A stretch of DNA of 64,000 nucleotides from Anthoceros angustus. Taxonomy: Eukaryota; Plantae; Anthocerotophyta. A program made the translations under genes and the position numbers. Below the pieces are notes generated by a model. It worked only from the letters and a program-made list of their open reading frames with translations, did no database searches and was not told the origin of the DNA. Every line of letters begins with the position of its first letter. The stretch's first letter is position 1. Shown piece by piece: positions 3,040 to 59,672 of this stretch. The stretch covers positions 575,252 to 639,251 of the forward strand of contig MU008158.1 of assembly GCA_010909165.1 (NCBI GenBank), in the 5' to 3' direction.

Positions 3040-3073
<34 letters not shown>

Positions 3074-36982: not shown

Positions 36983-37115
36983 GAACACTCCGTGCGTCAT
37001 ACCACAAAATGAGACACTCCGTGAGTCATACCACAAAATGGAACACTCCGCGTGAGTCATACCACAAAATGGAGTTCGAACAGTCTGTGAGTCATATCAC
37101 AAAATGGAGTTCGAA
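36983..37115. repeat. 29-35-bp tandem repeat x4 at the left border of the large array
   Basis: (gaa/aga)cactccgtgagtcataccacaaaatg with variants. Confidence 0.9.
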
Positions 37116-37388
37116 TGAAATGATGGTAAACATCTTGTACTGATTCTATGCATCAAACAATTCAAATGTATCCTTTCTAACCACTCTGACGCACGCAACC
37201 GTGGCATCCTCGGACTATCATGTACATGATGGGAGTGGGTCGTCCCGGGACTCATGGCGCGATTCTCTCGTCCCGAGAATGTCATGTATGAGTCGCGGTG
37301 GTCCGTCGTAGGACTCCTGACGCGCACGAGTGGAACGATAACTTTGAAGAAGGTTTTAACATAACGTATAAAAATATGGATTATCTAG

Positions 37389-38072
37389 CTAAATCCGGTT
37401 GGTTACATAGGACTTTGAGGCTCCTTGGCTTCCGTGAATAGAGTATTTCAACTGAGTTTTATAGCTAGTGACCACGAAGCAGGTTAATGCAATTGTAATG
37501 ACTTCCTCCGTCGTACCATATGGTGATGGTACGTGAATCATTCTTGCGCGCTTTGGTGGGCTCATACGTCTGCGGGGCATGACACCGCCTCGCCTCCACA
37601 TAAATGCGGATGGGTCGGTGTAGAACCTGCTAGCATCGATCTCGAGTTCGCCGCCCCACTCCGTGCTCCTCTTCATCCTTTTGACATAGTCGGTGAAGTC
37701 CCCTTCGACTACATCCTCGTAAGTCCGCTTTGTCTTTCCAACTCGGCAACGGCCGGAGGACGCCCGCCACACGCCTGCCTCGTCATCCAACGGTGGTTTC
37801 AACCATGGAAGTTTGAGGCTGCCACGGAGCGGAATAGGCACTTGCCGTCCCAACGCGCCCAACTTCGTACTCATCTTGTTTGAGTATCCGAGTTCCTTTA
37901 GGTGCTACAAAGGGACCAAAAATAGTTGTCGGCGCCGTCTTTTCACGCTTGTTCACTACTTTTGATGGTGTACATGTGTCGCGTGTCTTTGTTCTCTTGC
38001 ACGTTTTGCCGCCTCCACCTTGGGCGATGCATCCAAGTCCCATAGTTTGCGTTTAACCCCAACGCGCCTCAT
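37389..38072 (-). CDS. OTU-family cysteine protease/deubiquitinase-like ORF, copy 1 of 10; other ATGs at about 40268, 42455, 44630, 46955, 49129, 51284, 53460, 55634 and 57825
   Basis: Pieces assembled across frames and copies: DGKCLFRSVA, ETQGRVAGVLR.RAVAELERQRRTYEDVVEGDFTDYVKRMKRSTEWGGELEITMLA.VLHRPIRIY, GGVMPLQTY, TITIWYDGGSHYNCI. No single copy is open as assembled. Confidence 0.75.
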
Positions 38073-38172
38073 CGATTCTCTTGAGTCGCAAGACTAGCTG
38101 CAATTTGTCTCTCAAGCTTTCAATGTTGCCAAGTCAAGAAAAACTTTGTGCCTAGTTTTAGAACCGGGGCCC

Positions 38173-38180
38173 TACTTATA
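38173..38180 (-). promoter_or_regulatory. TATA-like element (TATAAGTA) about 100 bp upstream of the OTU ATG, present in every unit
   Basis: Plus strand tacttata in ggggccctacttatacctttg; position fits a core promoter. Confidence 0.35.
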
Positions 38181-38734
38181 CCTTTGAGCTATAACGAACG
38201 CACCATGCTCCAAGGAGAAACATGTCCTTGACCTTCGACACATGTAGTTTTATTTAGAGAATGTCGACACATGTGATTTGGGGCATGAGAGGAAAAATCC
38301 GGGATCGGAAAATTAATGCACCAAATTCTCTAGAAAAGCGACAAAGCTTGCAGCAGTGACGCTCAATAGTAGTGACCGTTGAGACTTCTTGCGGGGCTTG
38401 TTGGGTCAGATTGACAAAACTCTATTGCAAGTGTTTTGTGTCCGGCGATTTAGATCGATCTTGCTCCACACGCATGTTACTCCGCCTCCTTTGATCATGA
38501 CCTCATCCCGGGGTGGCATGTCGGGATTGTTTTGTCCTGTGAGTCATGACGCGTGAGTGTCGCATCCCGGAGTGGTGCGTCCGTGCGTCGGTTGTTCCGT
38601 TCACAATGTGGACTTAGTGGATGGGTGGACTTGCCTTTAGGCATTAATTACGAGGCCTACAAAGATTTAACACTGGTCATCTTAGCTCTAGATGACGCTA
38701 CGAGTTTGGTTTCGCATAATATTTAGTCCTAAGT

Positions 38735-39559
38735 ATGGACATCATGCCCGCTCCTCTCACCCATCCACTCTTCCCAACCTTCCTCATCTCCATTGACACA
38801 CGTGAAACCTTTGGTGCGCTTGCTTGGGAAGTCTTCAAAATCCGCAACCTCTTGACTACGGCGATGCATATGACTCCACGGAAGTTCCATCGTAGCTGCG
38901 GTCAGCATGCGAAAGATTGGTATCAAAACCACGCGAGGCGTACTCGTGCACGCGCGCATGCATGATTACCACGACTCGTGTTTGCATGTGATCATCATTG
39001 TGATCTCTATGCTCGTGCCTCGTAAGCGGCGGTGGCCGTTTGGAACATGGGGAACAATGGTCTCCCTTGCGGACATCCGGTGATCGCACAATTGTAGATT
39101 CGTGTGAATTCCTAACTCATTGCGGTTGGATGTGCAACGATCGCAAATGATGCGCTTTACAATGCAATGCTTTTACTCTATCGTCACTGCCTACCTATGT
39201 ACTACAAAGTGAGACCAAGGTCCAAGGAAGAAAAAAATGAACCAATCAACGGTATAACTTACGATATTTCAAGGCCCAAGAAGATATCCTCCACGATTGC
39301 TTGCGGCTTAATTGTTTGAATCACTTTGTGTTGCTGAAGTTTGCAATTGCCCGTCGATGCCACTCGGGTGAGTTTAGGTGTACACCATCCCGGAGTGCCG
39401 ATGTGCGCAAGTGTCCCGTCCGGAGGAGTTGTGTATCGCGAGTGTTCCGTCAAGGAATCTTGGCGCACGCAACCGTGCCATCCCGGGACTCTCGTGTACA
39501 TGATCCCTAGGACTCGACGCACGAGTGGAACGATAACTTTGAAGAAGGTTTTGACATAA
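38735..39559 (+). pseudogene. Second, convergent ORF-like region of the repeat unit, unknown family, with three in-frame stops; one per unit
   Basis: MDIMPAPLTHPLFPTFLISIDTRETFGALAWEVFKIRNLL...KDWYQNHARNVLVHAHA*LPRLVFACDHHCDLYARAS*AAVAVWNMGNNGLPCGHPVIAQL*IREFLTHCGWMCNVANDALYNAMLLLYRH...; ends about 24 bp from the OTU stop. Confidence 0.4.
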
Positions 39560-42500
39560 CGTATAAAAATATGGATTATCTAGCTAAATCCGGTTGGTTA
39601 CATAGGACTTTGAGGCTCCTTGGCTTCCGTGAATAGAGTATTTCAACCGAGTTTTATAGCTAGTGACCATGAAGCGAGTTAATGCAATTGTAATGACTTC
39701 CTCCGTCGTACCATATGGTGATGGTACGTGAATCATTCTTCGCGCTTTGGTGGGCTCATACGTCTGCGGGGCATGACACCGCCTCGCACTCCACATAAAT
39801 GCGGATGGGTCGGTGTAGAACCTGCTAGCATCGATCTCGAGTTCGCCGCCCCACTCCGTGCTCCTCTTCATCCTTTTGACATAGTCGGTGAAGTCCCCTT
39901 CGACTACATCCTCGTAAGTCCGCCTTTGTCTTTCCAACTCGGCAGCCCGGCCGGAGGACGCCCGCCACACGCCCTTGCGTCTCGTCATCCAACGGTGGTT
40001 TCAACCATGGAAGTTTGAGGCTGCCACGAGCGGAATAGGCACTTGCCGTCCCCAACGCGCCCAACCGTACTCATCTTGTTTGAGTATCCGAGTTCCTTTA
40101 GGTGCTACAAAGGGACCAAAAATAGTTGTCGGCGTCTTTTCACGCTTGTTCACTACTTTTGATGGTGTACATGTGTCGCGTGTCTTTGTTCTCTTGCACG
40201 TTTTTGCCGCCTCCACCTTGGGCGATGCATCCAAGTCCCATAGTTTGCGTTTAACCCCAACGCCTCATCGATTCTCTTGAGTCGCAAGACTAGCTGCAAT
40301 TTGTCTCTCAAGCTTTCAATGTTGCCAAGTCAAGAAAAACTTTGTGCCTAGTTTTAGAACCGGGGCCCTACTTATACCTTTGAGCTATAACGAACGCACC
40401 ATGCTCCAAGGAGAAACATGTCCTTGACCTTGACACATGTAGTTTTATTTAGAGAATGTCGACACATGTGATTTGGGGCATGAGAGGAAAAATCCGGATC
40501 GGAAAATTAATGCACCAAATTCTCTAGAAAGCGACAAAGCTTGCAGCGGTGACGCTCAATAGTAGTGAGCGTTGAGACTTCTTGGGCTTGTTGGGTCGAT
40601 TGACAAAACTCTATTGCAAGTGTTTTGTGTCCGCGATTTAGATCGATCTTGCTCCACACGCATGTTACTCCGCCTCCTTTGATCATGACCTCATCCGGGG
40701 TGGCATGTCGGGATTGTTTTGTCCTGTGAGTCATGACGCGTGAGTGTCGATCCCGGAGTGGTGCGTCTGCGTGCGGTTGTTCCGTTCACAATGTGGACTT
40801 AGTGGATGGGTGGACTTGCCTTTAGGCATTAATTACGTAGGCCTACAAAGATTTAACATCGGTCATCTTAGCTCTAGATGACGCTACGAGTTTGGTTTCG
40901 CATAATATTTAGTCCTGTTAAGTATGGACATCATGCCCGCCTCCTCTCGCCCATCCACTCTTCCCAACCTTCCTCATCTCCATTGACACACGTGAAACCT
41001 TTGGTGCGCTTGCTTGGGAAGTCTTCAAAATCCGCAACCTCTTGACTACGGCGATGCATATGACTCCACGGAAGTTCCATCGTAGCATGCGATCAGCTCG
41101 AAGATTGGTATCAAAACCACGCGAGGAACGTACTCGCGCGCATGCATGATTACCACGACTCGTGTTTGCATGTGATCATCATTGTGATCTCTATGCTCGT
41201 GCCTCGTGGCGGTGGCCGTTTGGAACATGGGGAACAATGGTCTCCCTTGCGGACATCCGGTGATCGCACAATTGTAGATTCGTGTGAATTCCTAACTCAT
41301 TGCGGTTGGATGTGCAACGTCGCAAATGATGCGCTTTACAATGCAATGCTTTTACTCTATCGTCACTGCCTACCTATGTACTACAAAGTGAGACCAAGGT
41401 CCAAGGAAGAAAAAAATGAACCAATCATCGGTATAACTTACGATATTTCAAGGCCCAAGAAGATATCCTCCACGATTGCTTGCGGCTTAATTGTTTGAAT
41501 CACTTTGTGTTGCTGAAGTTTGCAATTGCCGTCGATGCCACTCGGGTGAGTTTAGGTGTACACCATCCGGAGTCTTGATGTGCGCAAGTGTCCCGTCCAG
41601 AGGAGTTGTGTATCGCGAGTGTTCCGCCCAAGGAATCTTGGCGCGCAACGTGCCATCCCGGGACTCTCGTGTACATGATCCCTAGGACTCGACGCGCACG
41701 AGTGGAACGATAACTTTGAAGAAGGTTTTGACATAACGTATAAAAATATGGATTATCTAGCTAAACCGGTTGGTTACATAGGACTTTGAGGCTCCTTGGC
41801 TTCCGTGAATAGAGTATTTCAACCGAGTTTTATAGCTAGTGACCATGAAGCGAGTTAATGCAATTGTAATGACTTCCTCCGTCGTACCATATGGTGATGG
41901 TACGTGAATCATTCTTGCGCGCTTTGGTGGGCTCATATGTCTGCAGGGGCATGACACCGCCTCGCACTCCACATAAATGCGGATGGGTCGGTGTAGAACT
42001 GTGCAGCATCGTGATCTCGAGTTCGCCGCCCCACTCCGTGCTCCTCTTCATCCTTTTGACATAGTCGGTGAAGTCCCCTTGACTACATCCTCGTAAGTCC
42101 GCCTTTGTCTTTCCAACTCGGCAACAGCCCGGCCGGAGGACGCCCGCCACACGCCTTGCGTCTCGTCATCCAACGGTGGTTTCAACCATGGAAGTTTGAG
42201 GCTGCCACGGAGCGGAATAGGCACTTGCCGTCCCCCAACGCCCAACTTCGTACTCATCTTGTTTGAGTATCCGAGTTCCTTTAGGTGCTACAAAGGGACC
42301 AAAAATAGTTGTCGGCGCCGTCTTTTCACGCTTGTTCACTACTTTTGATGGTGTACATGTGTCGCGTGTCTTTGTTCTCTTGCACGTTTTGCCGCCTCCA
42401 CCTTGGGCGATGCATCCAAGTCCCATAGTTTGCGTTTAACCCCAACGCGCCTCATCGATTCTCTTGAGTCGCAAGACTAGCTGCAATTTGTCTCTCAAGC

Positions 42501-45500
42501 TTTCAATGTTGCCAAGTCAAGAAAAACTTTGTGCCTAGTTTTAGAACCGGGGCCCTACTTATACCTTTGAGCTATAACGAACGCACCATGCTCCAAGGAG
42601 AAACATGTCCTTGACCTTCGACACATGTAGTTTTATTTAGAGAATGTCGACACATGTGATTTGGGGCATGAGAGGAAAAATCCGGGATCGGAAAATTAAT
42701 GCACCAAATTCTCTAGAAAAGCGACAAAGCTTGCGTGATGACGCTCAATAGTAGTGAGCGTTGAGACTTCTTGGGCTTGTTGTCGATTGACAAAACTCTA
42801 TTGCAAGTGTTTTGTGTCCGGCGATTTAGATCGATCTTGCTCCACACGCATGTTACTCCGCCTCCTTTGATCATGACCTCATCCCGGTGTGGCATGTCGG
42901 GATTGTTTTGTCCGAGTCATGACGCGTGAGTGTCGCATCCCGGAGTGGTGCGTCGTGCGTCGTTGTTCCGTTCACAATGTGGACTTAGTGGATGGGTGGA
43001 CTTGCCTTTAGGCATTAATTACGAGGCCTACAAAGATTTAACACTGGTCATCTTAGCTCTAGATGACGCTACGAGTTTGGTTTCGCATAATATTTAGTCC
43101 TGTTAAGTATGGACATCATGCCCGCTCCTCTCACCCATCCACTCTTCCCAACCTTCCTCATCTCCATTGACACACGTGAAACCTTTGTGCGATTGCTTGG
43201 GAAGTCTTCAAAATCCGCAACCTCTTGACTACGGCGATGCATATGACTCCACGGAAGTTCCATCGTCGGTCAATCGCTCGAAGATTGGTATCAAAACCAC
43301 GCGAGGCGTACTCCGTGCAGCGCATGCATGATTACCACGACTCGTGTTTGCATGTGATCATCATTGTGATCTCTATGCTCGTGCCTCGTAAGCGGCGGTG
43401 GCCGTTTGGAACATGGGGAACAATGGTCTCCCTTGCGGACATCCGGTGATCGCACAATTGTAGATTCGTGTGAATTCTAACTCATTGCGGTTGGATGTGC
43501 AACGTCGCAAATGATGCGCTTTACAATGCAATGCTTTTACTCTATCGTCACCTGCCTACCTATGTACTACAAAGTGAGACCAAGGTCCAAGGAAGAAAAA
43601 AATGAACCAATCGTATAACTTACGATATTTCAAGGCCCAAGAAGATATCCTCCACGATTGCTTGCGGCTTAATTGTTTGAATCACTTTGTGTTGCTGAAG
43701 TTTGCAATTGCCCGTCGATGCCACTCGGGTGAGTTTAGGGTGTACACCATCCCGGAGTCTTGATGTGCGCAAGTGTCCCGCCCAGAGGAGTTGTGTATCG
43801 CGAGTGTTCCGTCAAGGAATCTTGGCGACGCAACTGCCATCCGGGACTCGTGTACATGATCCCTAGGACTCGACGCCGCAGTGGAACGATAACTTTGAAG
43901 AAGGTTTTGACATAACGTATAAAAATATGGATTATCTAGCTAAATCCGGTTGGTTACATAGGACTTTGAGGCTCCTTGGCTTCCGTGAATAGAGTATTTC
44001 AACCGAGTTTTATAGCTAGTGACCATGAAGCGTGTTAATGCAATTGTAATGACTTCCTCCGTCGTACCATATGGTGATGGTACGTGAATCATTCTTGCGC
44101 GCTTTGGTGGGCTCATACGTCTAGGGCATGACACCGCCTCGCACTCCACATAAATGCGGATGGGTCGGTGTAGAACTGTGGCAGCATCGTGATCTCGAGT
44201 TCGCCGCCCCACTCCGTGCTCCTCTTCATCCTTTTGACATAGTCGGTGAAGTCCCTTCGACTACATCCTCGTAAGTCCGCTTTGTCTTTCCAACTCGGCA
44301 ACAGCCCGGCCGGAGGACGCCCGCCACACGCCTTGCGTCGTCATCCAACGGTGGTTTGAACCATGGAAGTTTGAGGCTGCCACGAGCGGAATAGGCACTT
44401 GCCTCGCAACGCGCCCAACTTCGTACTCATCTTGTTTGAGTATCCGAGTTCCTTTAGGTGCTACAAAGGGACCAAAAATAGTTGTCGGCGCCGTCTTTTC
44501 ACGCTTGTTCACTACTTTTGATGGTGTACATGTGTCGCGTGTCTTTGTTCTCTTGCACGCTTTTTGCCGCCTCCACCTTGGGCGATGCATCCAAGTCCCA
44601 TAGTTTGCGTTTAACCCCAACGCGCCTCATCGATTCTCTTGAGTCGCAAGACTAGCTGCAATTTGTCTCTCAAGCTTTCAATGTTGCCAAGTCAAGAAAA
44701 ACTTTGTGCCTAGTTTTAGAACCGGGGCCCTACTTATACCTTTGAGCTATAACGCACCATGCTCCAAGGAGAAACATGTCCTTGACCTTCGACACATGTA
44801 GTTTTATTTAGAGAATGTCGACACATGTGATTTGGGGCATGAGAGGAAAAATCCGGATCGGAAAATTAATGCACCAAATTCTCTAGAAAGCGACAAAGCT
44901 TGCAGTTGACGCTCAATAGTAGTGAGCGTTGAGACTTCTTGCGGCTTGTTGGGTCGATTGACAAAACTCTATTGCAAGTGTTTTGTGTCCGCGATTTAGA
45001 TCGATCTTGCTCCACACGCATGTTACTCCGCCTCCTTTGATCATGACCTCATCCCGGAGTGGCATGTCGGGATTGTTTTGTCCTGTGAGTCATGACGCGT
45101 GAGTGTCGATCCCGGAGTGGTGCGTCCGTGCGTCTTGTTGTTCCGTTCACAATGTGGACTTAGTGGATGGGTGGACTTGCCTTTAGGCATTAATTACGTA
45201 GGCCTACAAAGATTTAACATCGGTCATCTTAGCTCTAGATGACGCCAGCGTGAGTGTCGCATCCCGGAGTGGTGCGTCCGTGCGTCTTGTTGTTCCGTTC
45301 ACAATGTGGACTTAGTGGATGGGTGGACTTGCCTTTAGGCATTAATTACGTAGGCCTACAAAGATTTAACATCGGTCATCTTAGCTCTAGATGACGCTAC
45401 GAGTTTGGTTTCGCATAATATTTAGTCCTGTTAAGTATGGACATCATGCCCGCTCCTCTCATCCACTCTTCCCAACCTTCCTCATCTCCATTGACACACG

Positions 45501-48500
45501 TGAAACCTTTGGTGCGCTTGCTTGGGAAGTCTTCAAAATCCGCAACCTCTTGACTACGGCGATGCATATGACTCACGGAAGTTCCATCGTAGCAGCAGCA
45601 ACGCTCGAAAGATTGGTATCAAAACCACGCGAGGAACGACCGCGCACGCGCATGCATGATTACCACGACTCGTGTTTGCATGTGATCATCATTGTGATCT
45701 CTATGCTCGTGCCTCGTAAGCGGCGGTGGCCGTTTGGAACATGGGGAACAATGGTCTCCCTTGCGACATCCGTGATATCGCACAATTGTAGATTCGTGAA
45801 TTCCTAACTCATTGCGGTTGGATGTGCAACGTCGCAAATGATGCGCTTTACAATGCAATGCTTTTACTCTATCGTCACCGCCTACCTATGTACTACAAAG
45901 TGAGACCAAGGTCCAAGGAAGAAAAAAATGAACCAATCATCGGTATAACTTACGATATTTCAAGGCCCAAGAAGATATCCTCCACGATTGCTTGCGGCTT
46001 AATTGTTTGAATCACTTTGTGTTGCTGAAGTTTGCAATTGCCCGCCGATGCCACTCGGTGAGTTTAGGTGTACACCATCCCGGAGGCCGATGTGCGCAAG
46101 TGTCCCGCCCAGGAGGAGTTGTGTATCGCGAGTGTTCCGCCCAAGGAATCTTGGCGCACGCAACCGTGCCATCCCGGACTCTCGTGTACATGATCCCTAG
46201 GACTCGACGCGCACGAGTGGAACGATAACTTTGAAGAAGGTTTTGACATAACGATAAAAATATGGATTATCTAGCTAAATCCGGTTGGTTACATAGGACT
46301 TTGAGGCTCCTTGGCTTCCGTGAATAGAGTATTTCAACCGAGTTTTATAGCTAGTGACCATGAAGCGAGTTAATGCAATTGTAATGACTTCCTCCGTACC
46401 ATATGGTGATGGTACGTGAATCATTCTTCGCGCTTTGGTGGGCTCATCGTCTAGGGCATGACACCGCCTCGCACTCCACATAAATGCGGATGGGTCGGTG
46501 TAGAACTGCTAGCATCGATCTCGAGTTCGCCGCCCACTCCGTGCTCCTCTTCATCCTTTTGACATAGTCGGTGAAGTCCCCTTCGACTACATCCTCGTAA
46601 GTCCGCTTTGTCTTTCCAACTCGAACAGCCCGGCCGAGGACGCCCCGCCACACGCCTTGCCTCGTCATCCAACGGTGGTTTCAACCATGGAAGTTTGAGG
46701 CTGCCACGAGCGGAATAGGCACTTGCCGTCCTCGCAACGCGCCCAACTGTACTCATCTTGTTTGAGTATCCGAGTTCCTTTAGGTGCTACAAAGGGACCA
46801 AAAATAGTTGTCGGCGCCGTCTTTTCACGCTTGTTCACTACTTTTGATGGTGTACATGTGTCGCGTGTCTTTGTTCTCTTGCACGCTTTTGCCGCCTCCA
46901 CCTTGGGCGATGCATCCAAGTCCCATAGTTTGCGTTTAACCCCAACGCGCCTCATCGATTCTCTTGAGTCGCAAGACTAGCTGCAATTTGTCTCTCAAGC
47001 TTTCAATGTTGCCAAGTCAAGAAAAACTTTGTGCCTAGTTTTAGAACCGGGGCCCTACTTATACCTTTGAGCTATAACGAACGCACCATGCTCCAAGGAG
47101 AAACATGTCCTTGACCTTCGACACATGTAGTTTTATTTAGAGAATGTCGACACATGTGATTTGGGGCATGAGAGGAAAAATCCGGATCGGAAAATTAATG
47201 CACCAAATTCTAGAAAGCGACAAAGCTTGCAGTTGACGCTCAATAGTAGTGAGCGTTGAGACTTCTATGGGCTTGTTGGTCGATTGACAAAACTCTATTG
47301 CAAGTGTTTTGTGTCCGCGATTTAGATCGATCTTGCTCCACACGCATGTTACTCCGCCTCCTTTGATCATGACCTCATCCTGTGGTGGCATGTCGGGATT
47401 GTTTTGTCCGAGTCATGACGCGTGAGTGTCGATCCCGGAGTGGTGCGTCCGTGCGTCTTGTTGTTCCGTTCACAATGTGGACTTAGTGGATGGGTGGACT
47501 TGCCTTTAGGCATTAATTACGTAGGCCTACAAAGATTTAACATCGGTCATCTTAGCTCTAGATGACGCTACGAGTTTGGTTTCGCATAATATTTAGTCCT
47601 GCTAAGTATGGACATCATGCCCGCTCCTCTCACCATCCACTCTTCCCAACCTTCCTCATCTCCATTGACACACGTGAAACCTTTGGTGCGCTTGCTTGGG
47701 AAGTCTTCAAAATCAACCTCTTGACTACGGCGATGCATATGACTCCACGGAAGTTCCATCGTAGCAACGCGTCATTTGTCGAAAGATTGGTATCAAAACC
47801 ACGCGAGGCGTACTCGTGCACGCGCATGCATGATTACCACGACTCGTGTTTGCATGTGATCATCATTGTGATCTCTATGCTCGTGCCTCGTAAGCGGCGG
47901 TGGCCGTTTGGAACATGGGGAACAATGGTCTCCCTTGCGGACATCCGGTGATCGCACAATTGTAGATTCGTGTGAATTCCTAACTCATTGCGGTTGGATG
48001 TGCAACGATCGCAAATGATGCGCTTTACAATGCAATGCTTTTACTCTATCGTCACCGCCTACCTATGTACTACAAAGTGAGACCAAGGTCCAAGGAAGAA
48101 AAAAATGAACCAATCAACGGTATAACTTACGATATTTCAAGGCCCAAGAAGATATCCTCCACGATTGCTTGCGGCTTAATTGTTTGAATCACTTTGTGTT
48201 GCTGAAGTTTGCAATTGCCGTCGATGCCACTCGGGTGAGTTTAGGTGTACACCATCCCGGAGTCTTGATGTGCGCAAGTGTCCCGGAGGAGTTGTGTATC
48301 GCGAGTGTTCCGCCCAAGGAATCTTGGCGCACGCAACCGTGCCATCCCGGACTCTCGTGTACATGATCCCTAGGACTCGGCGCCGCAGTGGAACGATAAC
48401 TTTGAAGAAGGTTTTGACATAACGATAAAAATATGGATTATCTAGCTAAATCCGGTTGGTTACATAGGACTTTGAGGCTCCTTGGCTTCCGTGAATAGAG

Positions 48501-51500
48501 TATTTCAACCGAGTTTTATAGCTAGTGACCATGAAGCAGTTAATGCAATTGTAATGACTTCCTCCGTCGTACCATATGGTGATGGTACGTGAATCATTCT
48601 TCTGCGCGCTTTGGTGGGCTCATACGTCTGCGGGGCATGACACCGCCTCGCACTCCACATAAATGCGGATGGGTCGGTGTAGAACTGCTAGCATCGATCT
48701 CGAGTTCGCCGCCCACTCCGTGCTCCTCTTCATCCTTTTGACATAGTCGGTGAAGTCCCCTCGACTACATCCTCGTAAGTCCGCTTTGTCTTTCCAACTC
48801 GGCCCGGCCGGAGGACGCCCGCCACACGCCCTGCGCCTCGTCATCCAACGGTGGTTTCAACCATGGAAGTTTGAGGCTGCCACGAGCGGAATAGGCACTT
48901 GCCGCCCCCGCAACGCGCCCAACCGTACTCATCTTGTTTGAGTATCCGAGTTCCTTTAGGTGCTACAAAGGGACCAAAAATAGTTGTCGGCGCCGTCTTT
49001 TCACGCTTGTTCACTACTTTTGATGGTGTACATGTGTCGCGTGTCTTTGTTCTCTTGCACGCTTTTGCCGCCTCCACCTTGGGCGATGCATCCAAGTCCC
49101 ATAGTTTGCGTTTAACCCCAACGCCTCATCGATTCTCTTGAGTCGCAAGACTAGCTGCAATTTGTCTCTCAAGCTTTCAATGTTGCCAAGTCAAGAAAAA
49201 CTTTGTGCCTAGTTTTAGAACCGGGGCCCTACTTATACCTTTGAGCTATAACGCACCATGCTCCAAGGAGAAACATGTCCTTGACCTTCGACATGTAGTT
49301 TTATTTAGAGAATGTCGACACATGTGATTTGGGGCATGAGAGGAAAAATCCGGATCGGAAAATTAATGCACCAAATTCTCTAGAAAAGCGACAAAGCTTG
49401 CAGCAGTTGACGCCAATAGTAGTGAGCGTTGAGACTTCTTGGGCTTGTTGGTCGATTGACAAAACTCTATTGCAAGTGTTTTGTGTCCGCGATTTAGATC
49501 GATCTTGCTCCACACGCATGTTACTCCGCCTCCTTTGATCATGACCTCATCCGGGGGTCATGTCGGGATTGTTTTGTCCGAGTCATGACGCGTGAGTGTC
49601 GCATCCCGGAGTGGTGCGTCCGTGCGTGCGGTTGTTCCGTTCACAATGTGGACTTAGTGGATGGGTGGACTTGCCTTTAGGCATTAATTACGAGGCCTAC
49701 AAAGATTTAACATCGGTCATCTTAGCTCTAGATGACGCTACGAGTTTGGTTTCGCATAATATTTAGTCCTAAGTATGGACATCATGCCCGCTCCTCTCAT
49801 CCACTCTTCCCAACCTTCCTCATCTCCATTGACACGTGAAACCTTTGGTGCGCTTGCTTGGGAAGTCTTCAAAATCCGCAACCTCTTGACTACGGCGATG
49901 CATATGACTCCACGGAAGTTCCATCGTGTAGCCGTCAACGTCAAGATTGGTATCAAAACCACGCGAGGAACGTACTCGTGCACGCCGCATGCATGATTAC
50001 CACGACTCGTGTTTGCATGTGATCATCATTGTGATCTCTATGCTCGCGTAAGCGGCGGTGGCCGCTTGGAACATGGGGAACAATGGTCTCCCTTGCACAT
50101 CCGTGATATCGCACAATTGTAGATTCGTGAATTCCTAACTCATTGCGTTGGATGTGCAACGATCGCAAATGATGCGCTTTACAATGCAATGCTTTTACTC
50201 TATCGTCACTGCCTACCTATGTACTACAAAGTGAGACCAAGGTCCAAGGAAGAAAAAAATGAACCAATCATCGGTATAACTTACGATATTTCAAGGCCCA
50301 AGAAGATATCCTCCACGATTGCTTGCGGCTTAATTGTTTGAATCACTTTGTGTTGCTGAAGTTTGCAATTGCCCGCCGATGCCACTCGGGTGAGTTTAGG
50401 TGTACACCATCCCGGAGTCGATGTGCGCAAGTGTCCCGTCCGAGGAGTTGTGTATCGCGAGTGTTCCGTCAAGGAATCTTGGCGCACGCAACCGTGCCAT
50501 CCCGGGACTCTCGTGTACATGATCCCTAGGACTCGACGCCACGAGTGGAACGATAACTTTGAAGAAGGTTTTGACATAACGATAAAAATATGGATTATCT
50601 AGCTAAATCCGGTTGGTTACATAGGACTTTGAGGCTCCTTGGCTTCCGTGAATAGAGTATTTCAACGAGTTTTATAGCTAGTGACCATGAAGCGTTAATG
50701 CAATTGTAATGACTTCCTCCGTCGTACCATATGGTGATGGTACGTGAATCATTCTTGCGCGCTTTGGTGGGCTCATACGTCTGCGGGGCATGACACCGCC
50801 TCGCACTCCACATAAATGCGGATGGGTGTGTAGAACTGCTAGCATCGGATCTCGAGTTCGCCGCCCCACTCCGTGCTCCTCTTCATCCTTTTGACATAGT
50901 CGGTGAAGTCCCCTTCGACTACATCCTCGTAAGTCCGCCTTTGTCTTTCCAACTCGGCAACAGCCCGGCCGGAGGACGCCCGCCACACGCCTGCGCCTCG
51001 TCATCCAACGGTGGTTTCAACCATGGAAGTTTGAGGCTGCCACGAGCGGAATAGGCACTTGCCGTCCCAACGCGCCCAACTTACTCATCTTGTTTGAGTA
51101 TCCGAGTTCCTTTAGGTGCTACAAAGGGACCAAAAATAGTTGTCGGCGCCGTCTTTTCACGCTTGTTCACTACTTTTGATGGTGTACATGTGTCGCGTGT
51201 CTTTGTTCTCTTGCACGTTTTGCCGCCTCCACCTTGGGCGATGCATCCAAGTCCCATAGTTTGCGTTTAACCCCAACGCCTCATCGATTCTCTTGAGTCG
51301 CAAGACTAGCTGCAATTTGTCTCTCAAGCTTTCAATGTTGCCAAGTCAAGAAAAACTTTGTGCCTAGTTTTAGAACCGGGGCCCTACTTATACCTTTGAG
51401 CTATAACGAACGCACCATGCTCCAAGGAGAAACATGTCCTTGACCTTCGACATGTAGTTTTATTTAGAGAATGTCGACACATGTGATTTGGGGCATGAGA

Positions 51501-54500
51501 GGAAAAATCCGGATCGGAAAATTAATGCACCAAATTCTCTAGAAAAGCGACAAAGCTTGCAGTGACGCTCAATAGTAGTGAGCGTTGAGACTTCTTATGG
51601 GCTTGTTGGTCGATTGACAAAACTCTATTGCAAGTGTTTTGTGTCCGGCGATTTAGATCGATCTTGCTCCACACGCATGTTACTTCGCCCTCCTTTGATC
51701 ATGACCTCATCCCAGGACTGTGGCATGTCGGGATTGTTTTGTCCCAGGAGTCATGACGCACGTGAGTGTCGCATCCCGGGAGTGGTGCGTCCGTGCGTGC
51801 GGTTGTTCCGTTTCACAATGTGGACTTAGTGGATGGGTGGACTTGCCTTTAGGCATTAATTACGTAGGCCTACAAAGATTTAACATCGGTCATCTTAGCT
51901 CTAGATGACGCTACGAGTTTGGTTTCGCATAATATTTAGTCCTAAGTATGGACATCATGCCCGCTCCTCTCATCCACTCTTCCCAACCTTCCTCATCTCC
52001 ATTGACACACGTGAAACCTTTGGTGCGCTTGCTTGGGAAGTCTTCAAAATCCGCAACCTCTTGACTACGGCGATGCATATGACTCCACGGAAGTTCCATC
52101 GTGTAGCCGTCAACGTCAAGATTGGTATCAAAACCACGCGAGGAACGTACTCGTGCACGCCGCATGCATGATTACCACGACTCGTGTTTGCATGTGATCA
52201 TCATTGTGATCTCTATGCTCGCGTAAGCGGCGGTGGCCGTTTGGAACATGGGGAACAATGGTCTCCTTGCGGACATCCGGTGATCGCACAATTGTAGATT
52301 CGTGAATTCCTAACTCATTGCGGTTGGATGTGCAACGATCGCAAATGATGCGCTTTACAATGCAATGCTTTTACTCTATCGTCACTGCCTACCTATGTAC
52401 TACAAAGTGAGACCAAGGTCCAAGGAAGAAAAAAATGAACCAATCACCGTATAACTTACGATATTTCAAGGCCCAAGAAGATATCCTCCACGATTGCTTG
52501 CGGCTTAATTGTTTGAATCACTTTGTGTTGCTGAAGTTTGCAATTGCCCGTCGATGCCACTCGGGTGAGTTTAGGGTGTACACCATCCCGGAGTCTTGAT
52601 GTGCGCAAGTGTCCCGTCCAGAGGAGTTGTGTATCGCGAGTGTTCCGCCCAAGGAATCTTGGCGCACGCAACGTGCCATCCCGGACTCTCGTGTACATGA
52701 TCCCTAGGACTCGACGCGCAGTGGAACGATAACTTTGAAGAAGGTTTTGACATAACGTATAAAAATATGGATTATCTAGCTAAATCCGGTTGGTTACATA
52801 GGACTTTGAGGCTCCTTGGCTTCCGTGAATAGAGTATTTCAACCGAGTTTTATAGCTAGTGACCATGAAGCGTTAATGCAATTGTAATGACTTCCTCCGT
52901 CGTACCATATGGTGATGGTACGTGAATCATTCTTGCGCTTTGGTGGGCTCATACGTCTAGGGCATGACACCGCCTCGCACTCCACATAAATGCGGATGGG
53001 TCGGTGTAGAACTGCTAGCATCGATCTCGAGTTCGCCGCCCCACTCCGTGCTCCTCTTCATCCTTTTGACATAGTCGGTGAAGTCCCCTTCGACTACATC
53101 CTCGTAAGTCCGCTTTGTCTTTCCAACTCGGCAACAGCCCGGCCGGAGGACGCCCGCCACACGCCTCGTCATCCAACGGTGGTTTCAACCATGGAAGTTT
53201 GAGGCTGCCACGAGCGGAATAGGCACTTGCCGTCCCGCAACGCGCCCAACTTCGTACTCATCTTGTTTGAGTATCCGAGTTCCTTTAGGTGCTACAAAGG
53301 GACCAAAAATAGTTGTCGGCGCCGCCTTTTCACGCTTGTTCACTACTTTTGATGGTGTACATGTGTCGCGTGTCTTTGTTCTCTTGCACGCTTTTGCCGC
53401 CTCCACCTTGGGCGATGCATCCAAGTCCCATAGTTTGCGTTTAACCCCAACGCGCCTCATCGATTCTCTTGAGTCGCAAGACTAGCTGCAATTTGTCTCT
53501 CAAGCTTTCAATGTTGCCAAGTCAAGAAAAACTTTGTGCCTAGTTTTAGAACCGGGGCCCTACTTATACCTTTGAGCTATAACGAACGCACCATGCTCCA
53601 AGGAGAAACATGTCCTTGACCTTCGACACATGTAGTTTTATTTAGAGAATGTCGACACATGTGATTTGGGGCATGAGAGGAAAAATCCGGATCGGAAAAT
53701 TAATGCACCAAATTCTCTAGAAAAGCGACAAAGCTTGCAGTGACGCTCAATAGTAGTGAGCGTTGAGACTTCTTGCGGGCTTGTTGGTCGATTGACAAAA
53801 CTCTATTGCAAGTGTTTTGTGTCCGCGATTTAGATCGATCTTGCTCCACACGCATGTTACTCCGCCTCCTTTGATCATGACCTCATCCTGTGGCATGTCG
53901 GGATTGTTTTGTCCGAGTCATGACGCGTGAGTGTCGCATCCCGGAGTGGTGCGTCTGCGGCGGTTGTTCCGCTTCACAATGTGGACTTAGTGGATGGGTG
54001 GACTTGCCTTTAGGCATTAATTACGTAGGCCTACAAAGATTTAACATCGGTCATCTTAGCTCTAGATGACGCTACGAGTTTGGTTTCGCATAATATTTAG
54101 TCCTTAAGTATGGACATCATGCCCGCTCCTCTCACCCCATCCACTCTTCCCAACCTTCCTCATCTCCATTGACACACGTGAAACCTTTGGTGCGCTTGGG
54201 AAGTCTTCAAAATCCGCAACCTCTTGACTACGGCGATGCATATGACTCCACGGAAGTTCCATCGTAGCACCGCAATCAACGCCCGAAGATTGGTATCAAA
54301 ACCACGCGAGGAACGTGTCTGCACGCGCATGCATGATTACCACGACTCGTGTTTGCATGTGATCATCATTGTGATCTCTATGCTCGTGCTCGTAAGCGGC
54401 GGTGGCCGTTTGGAACATGGGGAACAATGGTCTCCCTTGCGGACATCCGTGATCGCACAATTGTAGATTCGTGAATTCCTAACTCATTGCGGTTGGATGT

Positions 54501-57500
54501 GCAACGTCGCAAATGATGCGCTTTACAATGCAATGCTTTTACTCTATCGTCACCGCCTACCTATGTACTACAAAGTGAGACCAAGGTCCAAGGAAGAAAA
54601 AAATGAACCAATCAACGTATAACTTACGATATTTCAAGGCCCAAGAAGATATCCTCCACGATTGCTTGCGGCTTAATTGTTTGAATCACTTTGTGTTGCT
54701 GAAGTTTGCAATTGCCCGCCGATGCCACTCGGGTGAGTTTAGGTGTACACCATCCCGGAGTGCCGATGTGCGCAAGTGTCCCGTCCAGAGGAGTTGTGTA
54801 TCGCGAGTGTTCCGTCCAAGGAATCTTGGCGCACGCAACCGTGCCATCCCGGACTCTCGTGTACATGATCCCTAGGACTCGACGCACGAGTGGAACGATA
54901 ACTTTGAAGAAGGTTTTGACATAACGTATAAAAATATGGATTATCTAGCTAAATCCGGTTGGTTACATAGGACTTTGAGGCTCCTTGGCTTCCGTGAATA
55001 GAGTATTTCAACCGAGTTTTATAGCTAGTGACCATGAAGCGAGTTAATGCAATTGTAATGACTTCTCCGTCGTACCATATGGTGATGGTACGTGAATCAT
55101 TCTTGCGCGCTTTGGTGGGCTCATACGTCTGCGGGGCATGACACCGCCTCGCACTCCACATAAATGCGGATGGGTGTGTAGAACTGCTAGCATCGATCTC
55201 GAGTTCGCCGCCCCACTCCGTGCTCCTCTTCATCCTTTTGACATAGTCGGTGAAGTCCCCTTCGACTACATCCTCGTAAGTCCGCCTTTGTCTTTCCAAC
55301 TCGGCAACCCGGCCGGAGGACGCCCGCCACACGCCTGCCTCGTCATCCAACGGTGGTTTCAACCATGGAAGTTTGAGGCTGCCACGAGCGGAATAGGCAC
55401 TTGCCGCCTCGCAACGCGCCCAACTTCGTACTCATCTTGTTTGAGTATCCGAGTTCCTTTAGGTGCTACAAAGGGACCAAAAATAGTTGTCGGCGCCGTC
55501 TTTTCACGCTTGTTCACTACTTTTGATGGTGTACATGTGTCGCGTGTCTTTGTTCTCTTGCACGCTTTTGCCGCCTCCACCTTGGGCGATGCATCCAAGT
55601 CCCATAGTTTGCGTTTAACCCCAACGCGCCTCATCGATTCTCTTGAGTCGCAAGACTAGCTGCAATTTGTCTCTCAAGCTTTCAATGTTGCCAAGTCAAG
55701 AAAAACTTTGTGCCTAGTTTTAGAACCGGGGCCCTACTTATACCTTTGAGCTATAACGAACGCACCATGCTCCAAGGAGAAACATGTCCTTGACCTTCGA
55801 CACATGTAGTTTTATTTAGAGAATGTCGACACATGTGATTTGGGGCATGAGAGGAAAAATCCGGGATCGGAAAATTAATGCACCAAATTCTCTAGAAAAG
55901 CGACAAAGCTTGCAGTTGACTCAATAGTAGTGAGCGTTGAGACTTCGGGGCTTGTTGGGTCGATTGACAAAACTCTATTGCAAGTGTTTTGTGTCCGCGA
56001 TTTAGATCGATCTTGCTCCACACGCATGTTACTCCGCCTCCTTTGATCATGACCTCATCCCGTGGCGTGGCATGTCGGGATTGTTTTGTCCTGAGTCATG
56101 ACGCGCGTGAGTGTCGCATCCCGGAGTGGTGCGTCTGCGTGCGGTTGTTCCGTTCACAATGTGGACTTAGTGGATGGGTGGACTTGCCTTTAGGCATTAA
56201 TTACGTAGGCCTACAAAGATTTAACACGGGTCATCTTAGCTCTAGATGACGCTACGAGTTTGGTTTCGCATAATATTTAGTCCTAAGTATGGACATCATG
56301 CCCGCTCCTCTCACCATCCACTCTTCCCAACCTTCCTCATCTCCATTGACACACGTGAAACCTTTGGTGCGATTGCTTGGGAAGTCTTCAAAATCCGCAA
56401 CCTCTTGACTACGGCGATGCATATGACTCCACGGAAGTTCCATCGTAGCAGCTGCAGTCAACGCTGTCTGAAAGATTGGTATCAAAACCACGCGAGGAAC
56501 GTACTCCGTGTACGCGCATGCATGATTACCACGACTCGTGTTTGCATGTGATCATCATTGTGATCTCTATGCTCGTGCCTCGTAAGCGGCGGTGGCCGTT
56601 TGGAACATGGGGGAACAATGGTCTCCCTTGCGGACATCCGGTGATCGCACAATTGTAGATTCGTGAATTCCTAACTCATTGCGGTTGGATGTGCAACGTC
56701 GCAAATGATGCGCTTTACAATGCAATGCTTTTACTCTATCGTCACCTGCCTACCTATGTACTACAAAGTGAGACCAAGGTCCAAGGAAGAAAAAAATGAA
56801 CCAATCATCGTATAACTTACGATATTTCAAGGCCCAAGAAGATATCCTCCACGATTGCTTGCGGCTTAATTGTTTGAATCACTTTGTGTTGCTGAAGTTT
56901 GCAATTGCCCGTCGATGCCACTCGGGTGAGTTTAGGTGTACACCATCCGGAGTCTTGATGTGCGCAAGTGTCCCGTCCGAGGAGTTGTGTATCGCGAGTG
57001 TTCCGTCAAGGAATCTTGGCGCACGCAACCGTGCCATCCCGGGACTCTCGTACATGATCCCTAGGACTCGACGCGCGAGTGGAACGATAACTTTGAAGAA
57101 GGTTTTGACATAACGTATAAAAATATGGATTATCTAGCTAAATCCGGTTGGTTACATAGGACTTTGAGGCTCCTTGGCTTCCGTGAATAGAGTATTTCAA
57201 CCGAGTTTTATAGCTAGTGACCATGAAGCGGTTAATGCAATTGTAATGACTTCCTCCGTCGTACCATATGGTGATGGTACGTGAATCATTCTTGCGCGCT
57301 TTGGTGGGCTCATACGTCTGCGGGGCATGACACCGCCTCGCACTCCACATAAATGCGGATGGGTCGGTGTAGAACTGTATAGCATCGGGATCTCGAGTTC
57401 GCCGCCCCTCCGTGCTCCTCTTCATCCTTTTGACATAGTCGGTGAAGTCCCCTTCGACTACATCCTCGTAAGTCCGCCTTTGTCTTTCCAACTCGGCAAC

Positions 57501-59498
57501 AGCCCGGCCGGAGGACGCCCGCCACACGCCTTGCGTCTCGTCATCCAACGGTGGTTTCAACCATGGAAGTTTGAGGCTGCCACGAGCGGAATAGGCACTT
57601 GCCGTCCCCTCGCAACGCGCCCAACCGTACTCATCTTGTTTGAGTATCCGAGTTCCTTTAGGTGCTACAAAGGGACCAAAAATAGTTGTCGGCCGTCTTT
57701 TCACGCTTGTTCACTACTTTTGATGGTGTACATGTGTCGCGTGTCTTTGTTCTCTTGCACGCTTTTGCCGCCTCCACCTTGGGCGATGCATCCAAGTCCC
57801 ATAGTTTGCGTTTAACGCGCCTCATCGATTCTCTTGAGTCGCAAGACTAGCTGCAATTTGTCTCTCAAGCTTTCAATGTTGCCAAGTCAAGAAAAACTTT
57901 GTGCCTAGTTTTAGAACCGGGGCCCTACTTATACCTTTGAGCTATAACGAACGCACCATGCTCCAAGGAGAAACATGTCCTTGACCTTCGACACATGTAG
58001 TTTTATTTAGAGAATGTCGACACATGTGATTTGGGGCATGAGAGGAAAAATCCGGATCGGAAAATTAATGCACCAAATTCTCTAGAAAAGCGACAAAGCT
58101 TGCGCGGCGCTCAATAGTAGTGAGCGTTGAGACTTCTTGGGCTTGTTGGGTCGATTGACAAAACTCTATTGCAAGTGTTTTGTGTCCGGCGATTTAGATC
58201 GATCTTGCTCCACACGCATGTTACTCCGCCTCCTTTGATCATGACCTCATCCCGGGGTGGCATGTCGGGATTGTTTTGTCCTGTGAGTCATGACGCGTGA
58301 GTGTCGATCCCGGAGTGGTGCGTCGTGCGTCTGCGGTTGTTCCGTTCACAATGTGGACTTAGTGGATGGGTGGACTTGCCTTTAGGCATTAATTACGTAG
58401 GCCTACAAAGATTTAACATCGTCATCTTAGCTCTAGATGACGCTACGAGTTTGGTTTCGCATAATATTTAGTCCTTAAGTATGGACATCATGCCCGCTCC
58501 TCTCACCCATCCACTCTTCCCAACCTTCCTCATCTCCATTGACACACGTGAAACCTTTGGTGCGCTTGCTTGGGAAGTCTTCAAAATCCGCAACCTCTTG
58601 ACTACGGCGATGCATATGACTCCACGGAAGTTCCATCGTAGCAGTACAGCAAGCGTCAAAGATTGGTATCAAAACCACGCGAGGAACGTACTCGTGCACG
58701 CATGCATGATTACCACGACTCGTGTTTGCATGTGATCATCATTGTGATCTCTATGCTCGTGCCTCGTGGCGGCGGTGGCCGTTTGGAACATGGGGAACAA
58801 TGGTCTCCCTTGCGACATCCGGTGATCGCACAATTGTAGATTCGTGTGAATTCCTAACTCATTGCGGTTGGATGTGCAACGTCGCAAATGATGCGCTTTA
58901 CAATGCAATGCTTTTACTCTATCGTCACCGCCTACCTATGTACTACAAAGTGAGACCAAGGTCCAAGGAAGAAAAAAATGAACCAATCAGGTATAACTTA
59001 CGATATTTCAAGGCCCAAGAAGATATCCTCCACGATTGCTTGCGGCTTAATTGTTTGAATCACTTTGTGTTGCTGAAGTTTGCAATTGCCCGTCGATGCC
59101 ACTCGGGTGAGTTTAGGTGTACACCATCCGGAGTCTTGATGTGCGCAAGTGTCCCGTCCAGAGGAGTTGTGTATCGCGAGTGTTCCGTCAAGGAATCTTG
59201 GCGCACGCAACCGTGCCATCCCGGACTCTCGTGTACATGATCCCTAGGACTCTGACGCACGAGTGGAACGATAACTTTGAAGAAGGTTTTGACATAACGT
59301 ATAAAAATATGGATTATCTAGCTAAATCCGGTTGGTTACATAGGACTTTGAGGCTCCTTGGCTTCCGTGAATAGAGTATTTCAACTGAGTTTTATAGCTA
59401 GTGACCATGAAGCGGTTAATGCAATTGTAATGACTTCTCCGTCGTACCATATGGTGATGGTACGTGAATCATTCTGCGCTTTGGTGGGCTCATAGTTA

Positions 59499-59672
59499 GG
59501 AACGGACGCGCGGAGGGGCGTCACGGCCGAGAACGGTCGAGGCCGTTAGGCCGAGACCGTTCTAGGCCGTGCGCCCCGACGCGCGTCCGTTCCCTGGCGT
59601 AAGGGAGCGGCCGAGTCTGGGGCCGAGACGCGGCTCCACTCGACTGCAGACCGAGGCGGGAGCCGAGGTCTG
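59499..59672. other. GC-rich triple-hairpin module abutting the right end of the array
   Basis: 95-nt hairpin 59499-59593, hairpin 59604-59637, hairpin 59647-59672; base pairing checked by hand. Confidence 0.85.

Follow-up and report, generated by a model that had tools for sequence, protein, structure and literature searches.

The closest described relatives of the gene considered here are the plant OTU4 proteins (Arabidopsis At3g57810; Pfam PF02338). Arabidopsis OTU4c cuts ubiquitin chains of the K48, K63 and linear types and depends on its catalytic Cys to do so (PMC3950621). A tandem deubiquitinase repeat is known from human RS447, in which a 4.7-kb unit carrying USP17 (DUB-3) is repeated in 20-103 copies; methylation has been reported for some copies, and expression is narrowly restricted (PMC2874809). 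OTU cysteine-protease domains also occur in Ginger1 transposases and in animal Helitrons (PMC2836005). With regard to sequencing errors, about 70% of consensus errors were traced to 5mC in the Dcm motif C5mC(A/T)GG, which the ONT basecallers of 2019 read wrongly, and methylation-linked nanopore errors recur so systematically that they prevail among the errors of the consensus (PMC6591954; cf. PMC10687267).

We compared a tandem array, located in a window of 64,000 nucleotides (the whole stretch of DNA analysed), with these systems. It shares the motifs GDG[RK]CLFRSVA, EGDF..Y......WGGE.E and ..Y.G..HY[DN] with plant OTU4, in equal order and spacing. In contrast to OTU4, its domain is about 36% identical as assembled, lacks introns and follows a basic tail of ~70 aa at the N-terminus that bears no relation to the corresponding part of OTU4, and the gene is tandemly amplified, broken in all assembled copies and without transcripts in one RNA run. 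As in RS447/USP17, kilobase units lie head to tail, are highly similar and hold one single-exon deubiquitinase reading frame each; however, USP17 belongs to the USP rather than the OTU family, has the longer unit and is found in an animal lineage, and its reading frames are intact and cytokine-induced, whereas the array is known from frame-broken assembled copies. The array resembles transposon-borne OTU genes in that an OTU domain lies inside repeated, selfish-looking DNA, but those domains are fused to or located beside an integrase or Rep-helicase within defined termini, while neither was found in the array, and its domain belongs with cellular OTU4. Like the nanopore Dcm errors, the presumed errors in the array are concentrated in CWG context. 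The Dcm case is bacterial, whereas plant CHG/CG repeat methylation is presumed for the array, whose assembly platform is not on record.

Architecture and surroundings of the array

Self-BLAST of one unit and a repeat search of the window revealed a head-to-tail array of a ~2.18-kb unit at 37309-59494. It consists of ten full units of 2157-2335 nt, starting at 37389, 39584, 41761, 43940, 46275, 48446, 50603, 52780, 54949 and 57138, and ends in a partial unit on either side (88 nt on the left, 173 nt on the right). Unit-to-unit identity is 95-97% with gaps counted. On the minus strand, each full unit has a stretch of 605-620 nt that runs from ATG to TAG without introns, confirming the ten intronless OTU-like copies given in the preliminary description. 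Unit 4 is the longest because it contains an internal duplication. The features are as follows.

37309..59494, no strand assigned: whole array of the ~2.18-kb unit, ten full and two partial units (self-BLAST and repeats, DNA-run depth)
37465..38072, minus strand: unit 1 OTU4-like gene body, 608 nt, seven frame switches as assembled (motifs, OTU4 profile)
39660..40268, minus strand: unit 2 OTU4-like gene body, 609 nt, six frame switches (motifs, OTU4 profile)
40369..40376, minus strand: TATA-like TATAAGTA, ~108 nt upstream of the unit-2 ATG, an example that recurs per unit (consensus match only)
41836..42455, minus strand: unit 3 OTU4-like gene body, 620 nt, four frame switches (OTU4 profile, PDB and protein matches)
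44016..44630, minus strand: unit 4 OTU4-like gene body, 615 nt, six frame switches (motifs, OTU4 profile)
45097..45397, no strand assigned: tandem duplication (152 nt) within unit 4, accounting for its length of 2335 nt
46351..46955, minus strand: unit 5 OTU4-like gene body, 605 nt, N-terminal tail and Cys loop in a shared frame (motifs)
48522..49129, minus strand: unit 6 OTU4-like gene body, 608 nt, five frame switches (motifs, OTU4 profile)
50678..51284, minus strand: unit 7 OTU4-like gene body, 607 nt, six frame switches, best single profile match (E 2e-8)
52856..53460, minus strand: unit 8 OTU4-like gene body, 605 nt, five frame switches (motifs, OTU4 profile)
55025..55634, minus strand: unit 9 OTU4-like gene body, 610 nt, five frame switches, WYDGGSHYN disrupted
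57214..57825, minus strand: unit 10 OTU4-like gene body, 612 nt, five frame switches, LKLPW-to-RSTE block in a single frame
59322..59494, minus strand: right-hand partial unit, OTU reading frame reduced to its 3' end, stop context included
59499..59593, no strand assigned: GC-rich near-perfect palindrome, 95 nt, abutting the right array end (folding dG -76.8 kcal/mol, z -10.2)

The array lies between genes, in the genome of a land plant of bryophyte grade. Its neighbours are ordinary plant genes with unbroken open reading frames of 468-1142 aa, a PPR gene adjoining, and its composition differs sharply from these surroundings. The arms of the palindrome occur nowhere else in the window.

The depth of the DNA run X1 was 130-300 on array unitigs versus ~8-10 on the unique flank. 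This excess of ~15-40x suggests that the real copy number exceeds the assembled one. The array thus has the kilobase-size unit, the long head-to-tail arrangement and the highly similar copies of a macrosatellite, but as assembled it lacks an intact, expressed reading frame per unit (no open copy; no RNA in a single run). Indeed, essentially no RNA was detected over the array in the single RNA data set (X2), in which the 3' end of the adjacent PPR gene was matched perfectly over 533 nt at a depth of 34. The idea of an active effector therefore found no support in this run, although conditional expression could have escaped a single data set.

OTU domain and its relation to OTU4

All 2754 six-frame pieces of the window were searched with a profile of 120 OTU4-like plant proteins at a cut-off of E<0.01. 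Every match fell on the minus strand of the array, and the rest of the window had none. Within each unit they are collinear with the profile (Cys loop 203-214, helix 243-296, His loop 314-334), and profile positions 1-196 had no significant match in the array. The preliminary description had placed all OTU hallmarks in every unit. This was true for CLFRS and for the basic-tail motifs KRKLW and CKRTK (10/10 each, minus strand), but not for DGKCLFRS (7/10), the helix-region motif EGDFTDYVKRMKRSTE (7/10) or WYDGGSHYN (8/10); WGGELEI was found in seven units and the shorter GGSHYN in nine. Similarly, CLFRSVAA can be read in units 1 and 3, whereas the other eight have one C fewer and read CLFRSW. 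The upstream TATA-like element was recovered, as a consensus match only.

Judged from the translated pieces, the agreement of motifs and profile with OTU4 is far above chance. GDGKCLFRSVA aligned to positions 204-214 of the profile, in the Cys loop, and shows the D-G-x-C-[LF]-F-R pattern of PF02338, and GGSHYNC, with the pattern H-Y-[DN], aligned to HYD of the profile and to HYN of yeast OTU2. The alignment with yeast OTU2 (PDB 7pl7) extends from the central helix to this HYN His loop, a region that unit 3 holds in a single frame (41839-42165). Among 1.84 billion representative proteins, the only true match was an OTU4 orthologue of Mesotaenium (E 2.3e-6, the sole one with E<0.001), a cellular streptophyte protein, and the proposed OTU domain with its resemblance to plant OTU4 was thereby upheld. 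The helix piece scored 28-31 bits with the OTU4 profile versus 15-18 bits with the generic Pfam OTU model. With PF02338, single-frame pieces reached 15-18 bits (E 0.005-0.04) against a gathering threshold of 23.3; due to the frame breaks, the domain is not covered by any single piece. A search of 5.8 billion proteins for annotated relatives of 105-332 aa yielded no close one. Full-length similarity including the N-terminal region and a common gene structure, as required for OTU4 orthology, were not found, and domain identity is low (~36%). We treat the array gene as a putative divergent OTU4 paralogue, not an orthologue.

Frame breaks and their sequence context

None of the ten copies is open as assembled, and each has 4-7 frame switches. 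Within the five homologous blocks, no copy contains an in-frame stop; all breaks are frame shifts. The ten-copy alignment has 380 gap columns compared to 81 substitution-only columns (~26 clean substitution columns), so that the earlier suspicion of non-biological, copy-specific gaps of 1-2 nt gains weight. The copies differ by indels and by same-length rewrites at CpG and CAG/CTG sites, and hardly by substitutions.

The gaps had been assigned to G/C runs. Instead, we found indels to be enriched at CpG (OR 3.7-4.3 in a single-reference test, 10.7 in an any-copy test) and at CAG/CTG (OR 6.6-10), with no enrichment at homopolymers in the array copies. Both contexts (CG and CHG) are subject to cytosine methylation in plants. 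The observed/expected ratio of CAG/CTG was 0.15-0.23 in the array versus 1.4-1.6 in the flanks, an ~8-fold depletion restricted to the array, while that of CpG was 1.04-1.11 versus 0.5-0.9. When CAG/CTG sites were grouped across the copies, these disagreed in 27 of 31 groups and all ten were identical in four; in many discordant groups, other copies show CG, CCG, CGW or WCG at this place. From this error context we infer methylation to be the cause of the errors.

A consensus of the ten copies would mislead rather than recover the coding state, because the majority state itself looks mis-called at many sites. With methylation imprinted in the consensus, the true coding state would therefore be unreadable from this assembly. 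The spacing between the Cys loop and the next block is 22 nt in eight copies and 23 nt in two, and is thus in frame in none, which lends no support to the proposal that the true unit is intact.

Part of the CAG/CTG depletion may be real. Contigs of X1 differ from the assembly by few substitutions; if X1 represents accurate short-read data, much of the depletion is real sequence and not error. The 38-codon block VAELERQ...WGGELEI is conserved, lacks CAG/CTG and has an unbroken frame, which argues for some real depletion. In addition, the ratio of the Gln codons CAA:CAG was 4:1 in the OTU pieces versus 28:115 in the flank genes. This bias fits genuine C-to-T pressure combined with selection on the protein; the gene would then have been functional until recently.

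State and origin of the array

We consider it slightly more likely than not that the array is a macrosatellite of a divergent OTU4 paralogue which is methylated and silent, its breaks being mostly methylation-derived consensus errors. A single 2.18-kb segment with an intronless, strongly diverged paralogue of the At3g57810 type would have been amplified head to tail, possibly by unequal exchange or replication slippage, and the same process would maintain uniformity. The paralogue of ~205 codons would carry its own ATG, TAG stop and TATA-like upstream element. The array would be densely methylated at CG and CHG sites and transcriptionally silent, and methylation may have left its imprint on the long-read consensus, with CAG/CTG and CpG sites mis-called as indels or as CG-containing strings. 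Such mis-calls could account for the copy-specific frameshifts and for the bulk of the apparent divergence. A copy that is intact and expressed is predicted to yield a cysteine deubiquitinase of the papain fold, with catalytic residues in GDGKC (Cys) and SHYN (His). We consider it somewhat less likely than not that the real genome holds an intact copy.

Another explanation is that every unit encodes an intact OTU deubiquitinase of ~205 aa, amplified for dosage and expressed conditionally in reproductive cells, under stress or upon infection, all breaks being assembly errors. A homologous path of ~205 codons without an in-frame stop and the retained catalytic motifs (GDGKCLFRSVA, EGDF..Y, WGGE.E, SHYN) are in line with this, as are a plausible ATG, stop and TATA-like element in the unit and the precedent of USP17. 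Two intervals vary most between the copies, and the longest variants there (unit 10, 120 nt; unit 3, 93 nt) are in frame and show the best homology; the major form in X1 has 3 additional nt at a hot spot before the unit-2 Cys loop (40052), which fits deletion-biased error; and the Gln codon shift is synonymous, matching purifying selection. We nevertheless consider such a family unlikely, given that no assembled copy is open, that the out-of-frame spacing behind the Cys loop is common to all ten and no well-supported insertion at this gap is among the X1 read differences listed, that RNA was absent over the array in X2, and that the search of 5.8 billion proteins yielded no close annotated relative. 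Rather speculative is a set of ~20-40 intact copies of a rapidly evolving OTU gene, gated by methylation and turned on only in a special state such as gametes, stress or infection, or a lineage-specific, self-amplifying OTU module with several arrays. If either were true, the strong loss of CAG/CTG but not of CpG, confined to the array, would be a genuine mark of CHG-directed mutation in a gene that selection still maintains at the protein level.

The sharp difference in composition, the OTU cargo of Ginger1 transposases and animal Helitrons, and array borders that fall anywhere within the unit and lack a target-site duplication, which would fit reintegration of a rolling-circle or circular-DNA product, could also point to a mobile element (an OTU-bearing LINE-type retroelement, Helitron, Ginger-like DNA transposon or endogenous virus) with the array as replication by-product. 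This is improbable, as was the selfish, virus-like or Helitron-borne cassette suggested before. Pfam searches of ten pieces on both strands gave no signal for reverse transcriptase, gag, transposase, Rep or helicase in the 1.5 kb outside the OTU region, Rfam had no match in this remainder, and the unit has only one poly(A)-like run (A7). The flanks share no inverted or direct terminal repeats, and no Helitron-like end was found; with neither partner domain nor element termini detected in these searches, a transposon-borne OTU gene (Ginger1, Helitron, LINE) was not supported. Relatives were absent from 2.9 million viral contigs and from JGI metagenome contigs, and the nearest protein is the cellular streptophyte OTU4. 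Nairovirus OTUs in the PDB search matched weakly (E ~0.3) and in the helix only, and with ordinary plant genes as neighbours an endogenous viral element was likewise not supported. Finally, we see hardly any chance that a gene with one or few copies was falsely expanded during assembly. The duplication of 152 nt within unit 4, being almost perfect, might have arisen as consensus stutter, but the X1 word depth was 179-307 on invariant array unitigs versus ~10 on the adjoining unique contig, and the genome should therefore contain more copies than assembled, not fewer.

If the units were intact and inducible, the array would be a rare plant protein-coding macrosatellite with a dosage-amplified deubiquitinase, possibly taking part in ubiquitin-based defence or chromatin control. 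For the silent, methylated macrosatellite that we favour, the more certain value is practical: CG/CHG methylation can apparently rewrite a long-read consensus, turning CAG/CTG into CG-containing strings and breaking frames. The assembly therefore does not reveal which of its repeat-borne genes are dead or alive, and taking the majority state of the copies is of no help. The array-limited CAG/CTG deficit is a cheap in-silico marker and could flag heavily CHG-methylated or mis-called regions in this genome.

The tandem array and its deubiquitinase-like gene

Self-BLAST of one unit against the window, together with a repeat search, confirmed the ten-copy tandem array proposed in the preliminary description. 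The head-to-tail array spans 37309-59494 and contains 10 full units (numbered 1 to 10 from left to right) of 2157-2335 nt each, with partial units of 88 nt at the left end and 173 nt at the right end. Pairwise identity between units is 95-97% when gaps are counted. The array escaped Tandem Repeats Finder simply because the program allows periods of at most 500. An internal 152-nt tandem duplication (45097-45397) accounts for the greater length of unit 4. The hot-spot state GCGTCTTGTTG is common to both 152-nt copies and to the same segment of unit 5, and is absent from the other units; the duplication is either a real local variant common to neighbouring copies or a consensus stutter.

In one DNA read set (the DNA run), word depth was about 10 on a contig of the unique left flank, and 179-307 on invariant array unitigs, with an average of about 200 over array bins, where word depth is not equal to copy number. 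Read depth shows the amplification to be real and points to roughly 15-40 copies, more than the 10 assembled; the additional ones would lie at this locus or in sister arrays.

The minus strand of every unit holds a 605-620-nt span from ATG to TAG that opens with MRRVGVKRKLW, and the OTU motifs quoted from the first reading of the sequence lie within these spans. A TATA-like element (TATAAGTA) is found about 108 nt upstream of the ATG. Single-frame pieces scored weakly against Pfam OTU (15-18 bits; cut-off 23.3 bits). A 109-aa piece of unit 3 aligned with yeast OTU2 (7pl7) from the central helix through the HYN His loop (E 0.006), and a HMMER search of 1.84 billion representative proteins returned a single real match for it, a 243-aa protein with 36% identity (E 2.3e-6). 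This protein, ME000311S05213 of Mesotaenium endlicherianum, belongs to the plant OTU4/At3g57810 family, and all of its 733 relatives at E<1e-10 contain PF02338. All 2754 six-frame pieces that the window yields were searched with a profile made from 120 OTU4 family proteins. Matches at E<0.01 were confined to the minus strand of the array and were collinear in each unit: Cys loop at profile positions 203-214, helix at 243-296 (E 1e-5 to 2e-8) and His loop at 314-334. The 7pl7 alignment, the Mesotaenium match and the profile matches settle the OTU domain call, and the likeness to OTU4 noted earlier was right. OTU4 of Arabidopsis is an active deubiquitinase that cuts K48, K63 and linear ubiquitin chains (PMC3950621).

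About 70 basic residues form the N-terminal stretch, for which the OTU4 profile and a protein atlas revealed no relatives; the atlas search with the N-terminal plus Cys-loop piece returned only compositional look-alikes (scores ≤0.54). A homologue search with the 188-aa ORF at 57141-57704 gave no match, and none of 10 array ORFs was present, by exact look-up, in a collection of 15 billion proteins. The remaining 1.5 kb of the unit showed no Pfam match (10 pieces) and no Rfam match. A plus-strand ORF at 38735-39584 and its equivalents, which vary in frame and length between copies, had no Pfam match either (4 copies); it looks like a chance ORF.

Reading frame and sequence composition

None of the assembled copies is open (0/10). 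Counted between 13 conserved anchors, the frame switches 4-7 times per unit; all breaks are frame shifts, and none of the five homologous blocks contains an in-frame stop. The modal anchor spacing is in frame for several intervals (54, 81, 48 and 51 nt). Two intervals vary most, and in each of them the longest variant is in frame (120 nt in unit 10, 93 nt in unit 3) and also yields the best homology. The spacing from CLFRS to the next block is never in frame, with 22 nt in 8/10 copies and 23 nt in 2/10, and the reading 'SVA(A)' that matches OTU4 occurs in units 1 and 3 only. The intact deubiquitinase proposed in the preliminary description is neither shown nor refuted.

A multiple alignment of the 10 units contained 380 gap columns, of which 239 were singletons, compared to 81 substitution-only columns. 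Once gap-adjacent columns were dropped, about 26 substitution columns were left, half of them local misalignments. In substitutions the copies are therefore near-identical, while their indel differences amount to about 3%, a ratio that is not a product of ordinary divergence. Gap columns lay within 1 nt of a CpG in 182/231 cases, compared to 26% of other columns (OR 10.7, p 4e-56). In a stricter single-reference test, indel sites were associated with CpG (OR 3.7-4.3) and with CAG/CTG (OR 6.6-10), and showed no excess at homopolymers.

The composition of the array was measured over 37389-59321 and compared to that of the flanks. Only in the array is CAG/CTG 8-fold depleted (observed/expected 0.15-0.23, 9-14 sites per 2 kb); the flanking genic DNA has a ratio of 1.4-1.6 and 95-105 sites per 2 kb. 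For CpG the observed/expected ratio is 1.04-1.11 within the array compared to 0.5-0.9 outside, and the shift in composition is sharp at the right array border. We consider this array-limited CAG/CTG deficit the most useful by-product of the analysis. Only 4/31 CAG/CTG site groups are uniform across the ten copies. Many of the others have CAG/CTG in some copies and CG, CCG, CGW or WCG at the same place in the rest, as in these examples:

AACTGAG in 1 copy, AACCGAG in 8
GTCAGAT in 1 copy, GTCGAT in 4, TCGAT in 5
CACTGGT in 2 copies, CATCGGT in 6

At many CAG/CTG sites the majority state of the ten copies looks wrong, and the true unit would therefore not be recovered by majority consensus.

Cytosine methylation in plants occurs in CG and CHG contexts, the latter mainly CWG. 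The array is probably heavily methylated, and the long-read consensus probably mis-called methylated sites; short-read polishing would have been unable to repair such errors in a repeat. With 2019 basecallers, 5mC in the CWG context of Dcm sites accounted for about 70% of nanopore consensus errors (PMC6591954), and novel modifications degrade nanopore assemblies more generally (PMC10687267). The array composition is either a methylation imprint of this sort, left in the consensus, or the signature of real CHG-directed mutation. Some of the CAG/CTG deficit may be real, because the 38-codon block VAELERQ...WGGELEI has neither a CAG/CTG nor a frame break, Gln codons are CAA 4 : CAG 1 in the OTU pieces compared to 28 : 115 in the flanking genes, the trimers enriched in the array include the deamination products CTA/TAG and CAA/TTG besides CpG-containing ones, and the DNA-run contigs show few substitutions relative to the assembly. 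If the DNA run consists of accurate short reads, the founder unit was already depleted in CAG/CTG, which would be in line with prolonged CHG-directed C-to-T pressure on a gene that selection maintained. Over 849 nt of the unique left flank (36400-37248), the DNA-run contig and the assembly disagree at 3 indels and at no substitution, indicating that indel disagreement between reads and assembly extends outside the repeat; these counts fit either sequencing platform.

Transcription and origin of the array

In one RNA read set (the RNA run), no transcription of the array was seen; depth was zero except for a few scraps of low similarity. The organism's RNA is present in this set, as contigs of the adjacent PPR gene match perfectly (533 nt at its 3' end, depth 34). 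An array of intact OTU genes expressed only under certain conditions would be in line with the stop-free blocks and the in-frame spacings; we consider it unlikely, given ten broken copies and an RNA run that shows no array transcripts. The best explanation, which we hold with moderate confidence, is that a divergent OTU4 paralogue forms a macrosatellite, either young or homogenised, that is methylated and silent. Its closest parallel in organisation is the human RS447/USP17 megasatellite (PMC2874809).

OTU domains borne by transposable elements are known in Ginger1 elements and animal Helitrons (PMC2836005). The array, however, has neither detectable terminal repeats nor a target-site duplication, a Pfam search of the remaining 1.5 kb of the unit found no reverse transcriptase or transposase, and scans of viral and metagenome sequences found no relatives. 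A Helitron was rejected, as no GC hairpin precedes a CTAG end and unit junctions lack a 5' TC. The suggested selfish or viral cassette thus finds no support, nor does the suggested effector, given an RNA run without array transcripts. The OTU gene may be a retrocopy, as its domain has no visible introns. However, the unit has no poly(A) tail, and neighbouring genes are also very long single ORFs; since genes here are intron-poor, the absence of introns is not strong evidence of retroposition.

Borders and flanking sequence

The array starts and ends at arbitrary positions within the unit. Abutting its right end is a 95-nt GC-rich near-perfect palindrome (59499-59593; dG -76.8 kcal/mol, z -10), the arms of which occur nowhere else in the window; two smaller hairpins follow, up to 59672. 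The palindrome could have promoted breakage or template switching during array formation. In the left flank, 37191-37230 weakly resembles (40 nt, 82%) the unit sequence that immediately precedes the array's starting point, a hint that the flank is the continuation of an older and diverged unit copy. The surrounding genes and gene pieces are as follows:

Left flank: GT92, GDA1/CD39, kinase, VPS51-like, DEAH7/PRP22 and E-type PPR genes, ordinary plant genes
60466-60774, minus strand: exon-size piece matching UPF0047/YjbQ (E 1e-8)
61707-61985, minus strand: exon-size piece matching the GST C-terminal domain (E 1e-4)

The two pieces to the right, on the same strand, may belong to normal genes as exons or may be captured fragments. 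ORFs in the flanking genes are unbroken (468-1142 aa). DEAH7 shares 79-80% identity with its orthologues from liverworts, ferns and seed plants alike, which places the host among deep-branching land plants, not crops. Very long single ORFs at 27525-34093 encode the VPS51-like protein (841 aa) and DEAH7/PRP22 (1142 aa). A 29-nt repeat (GAACACTCCGTGAGTCATACCACAAAATG) occurs three times at 36983-37073, about 240 nt before the array and just past the 3' end (~36932) of the RNA-run contig of the PPR gene. The AT-richer left part of the window contains a (TATG)37 microsatellite (3032-3178) and a 173-nt satellite in 5 copies with 96% matches (3380-4226).
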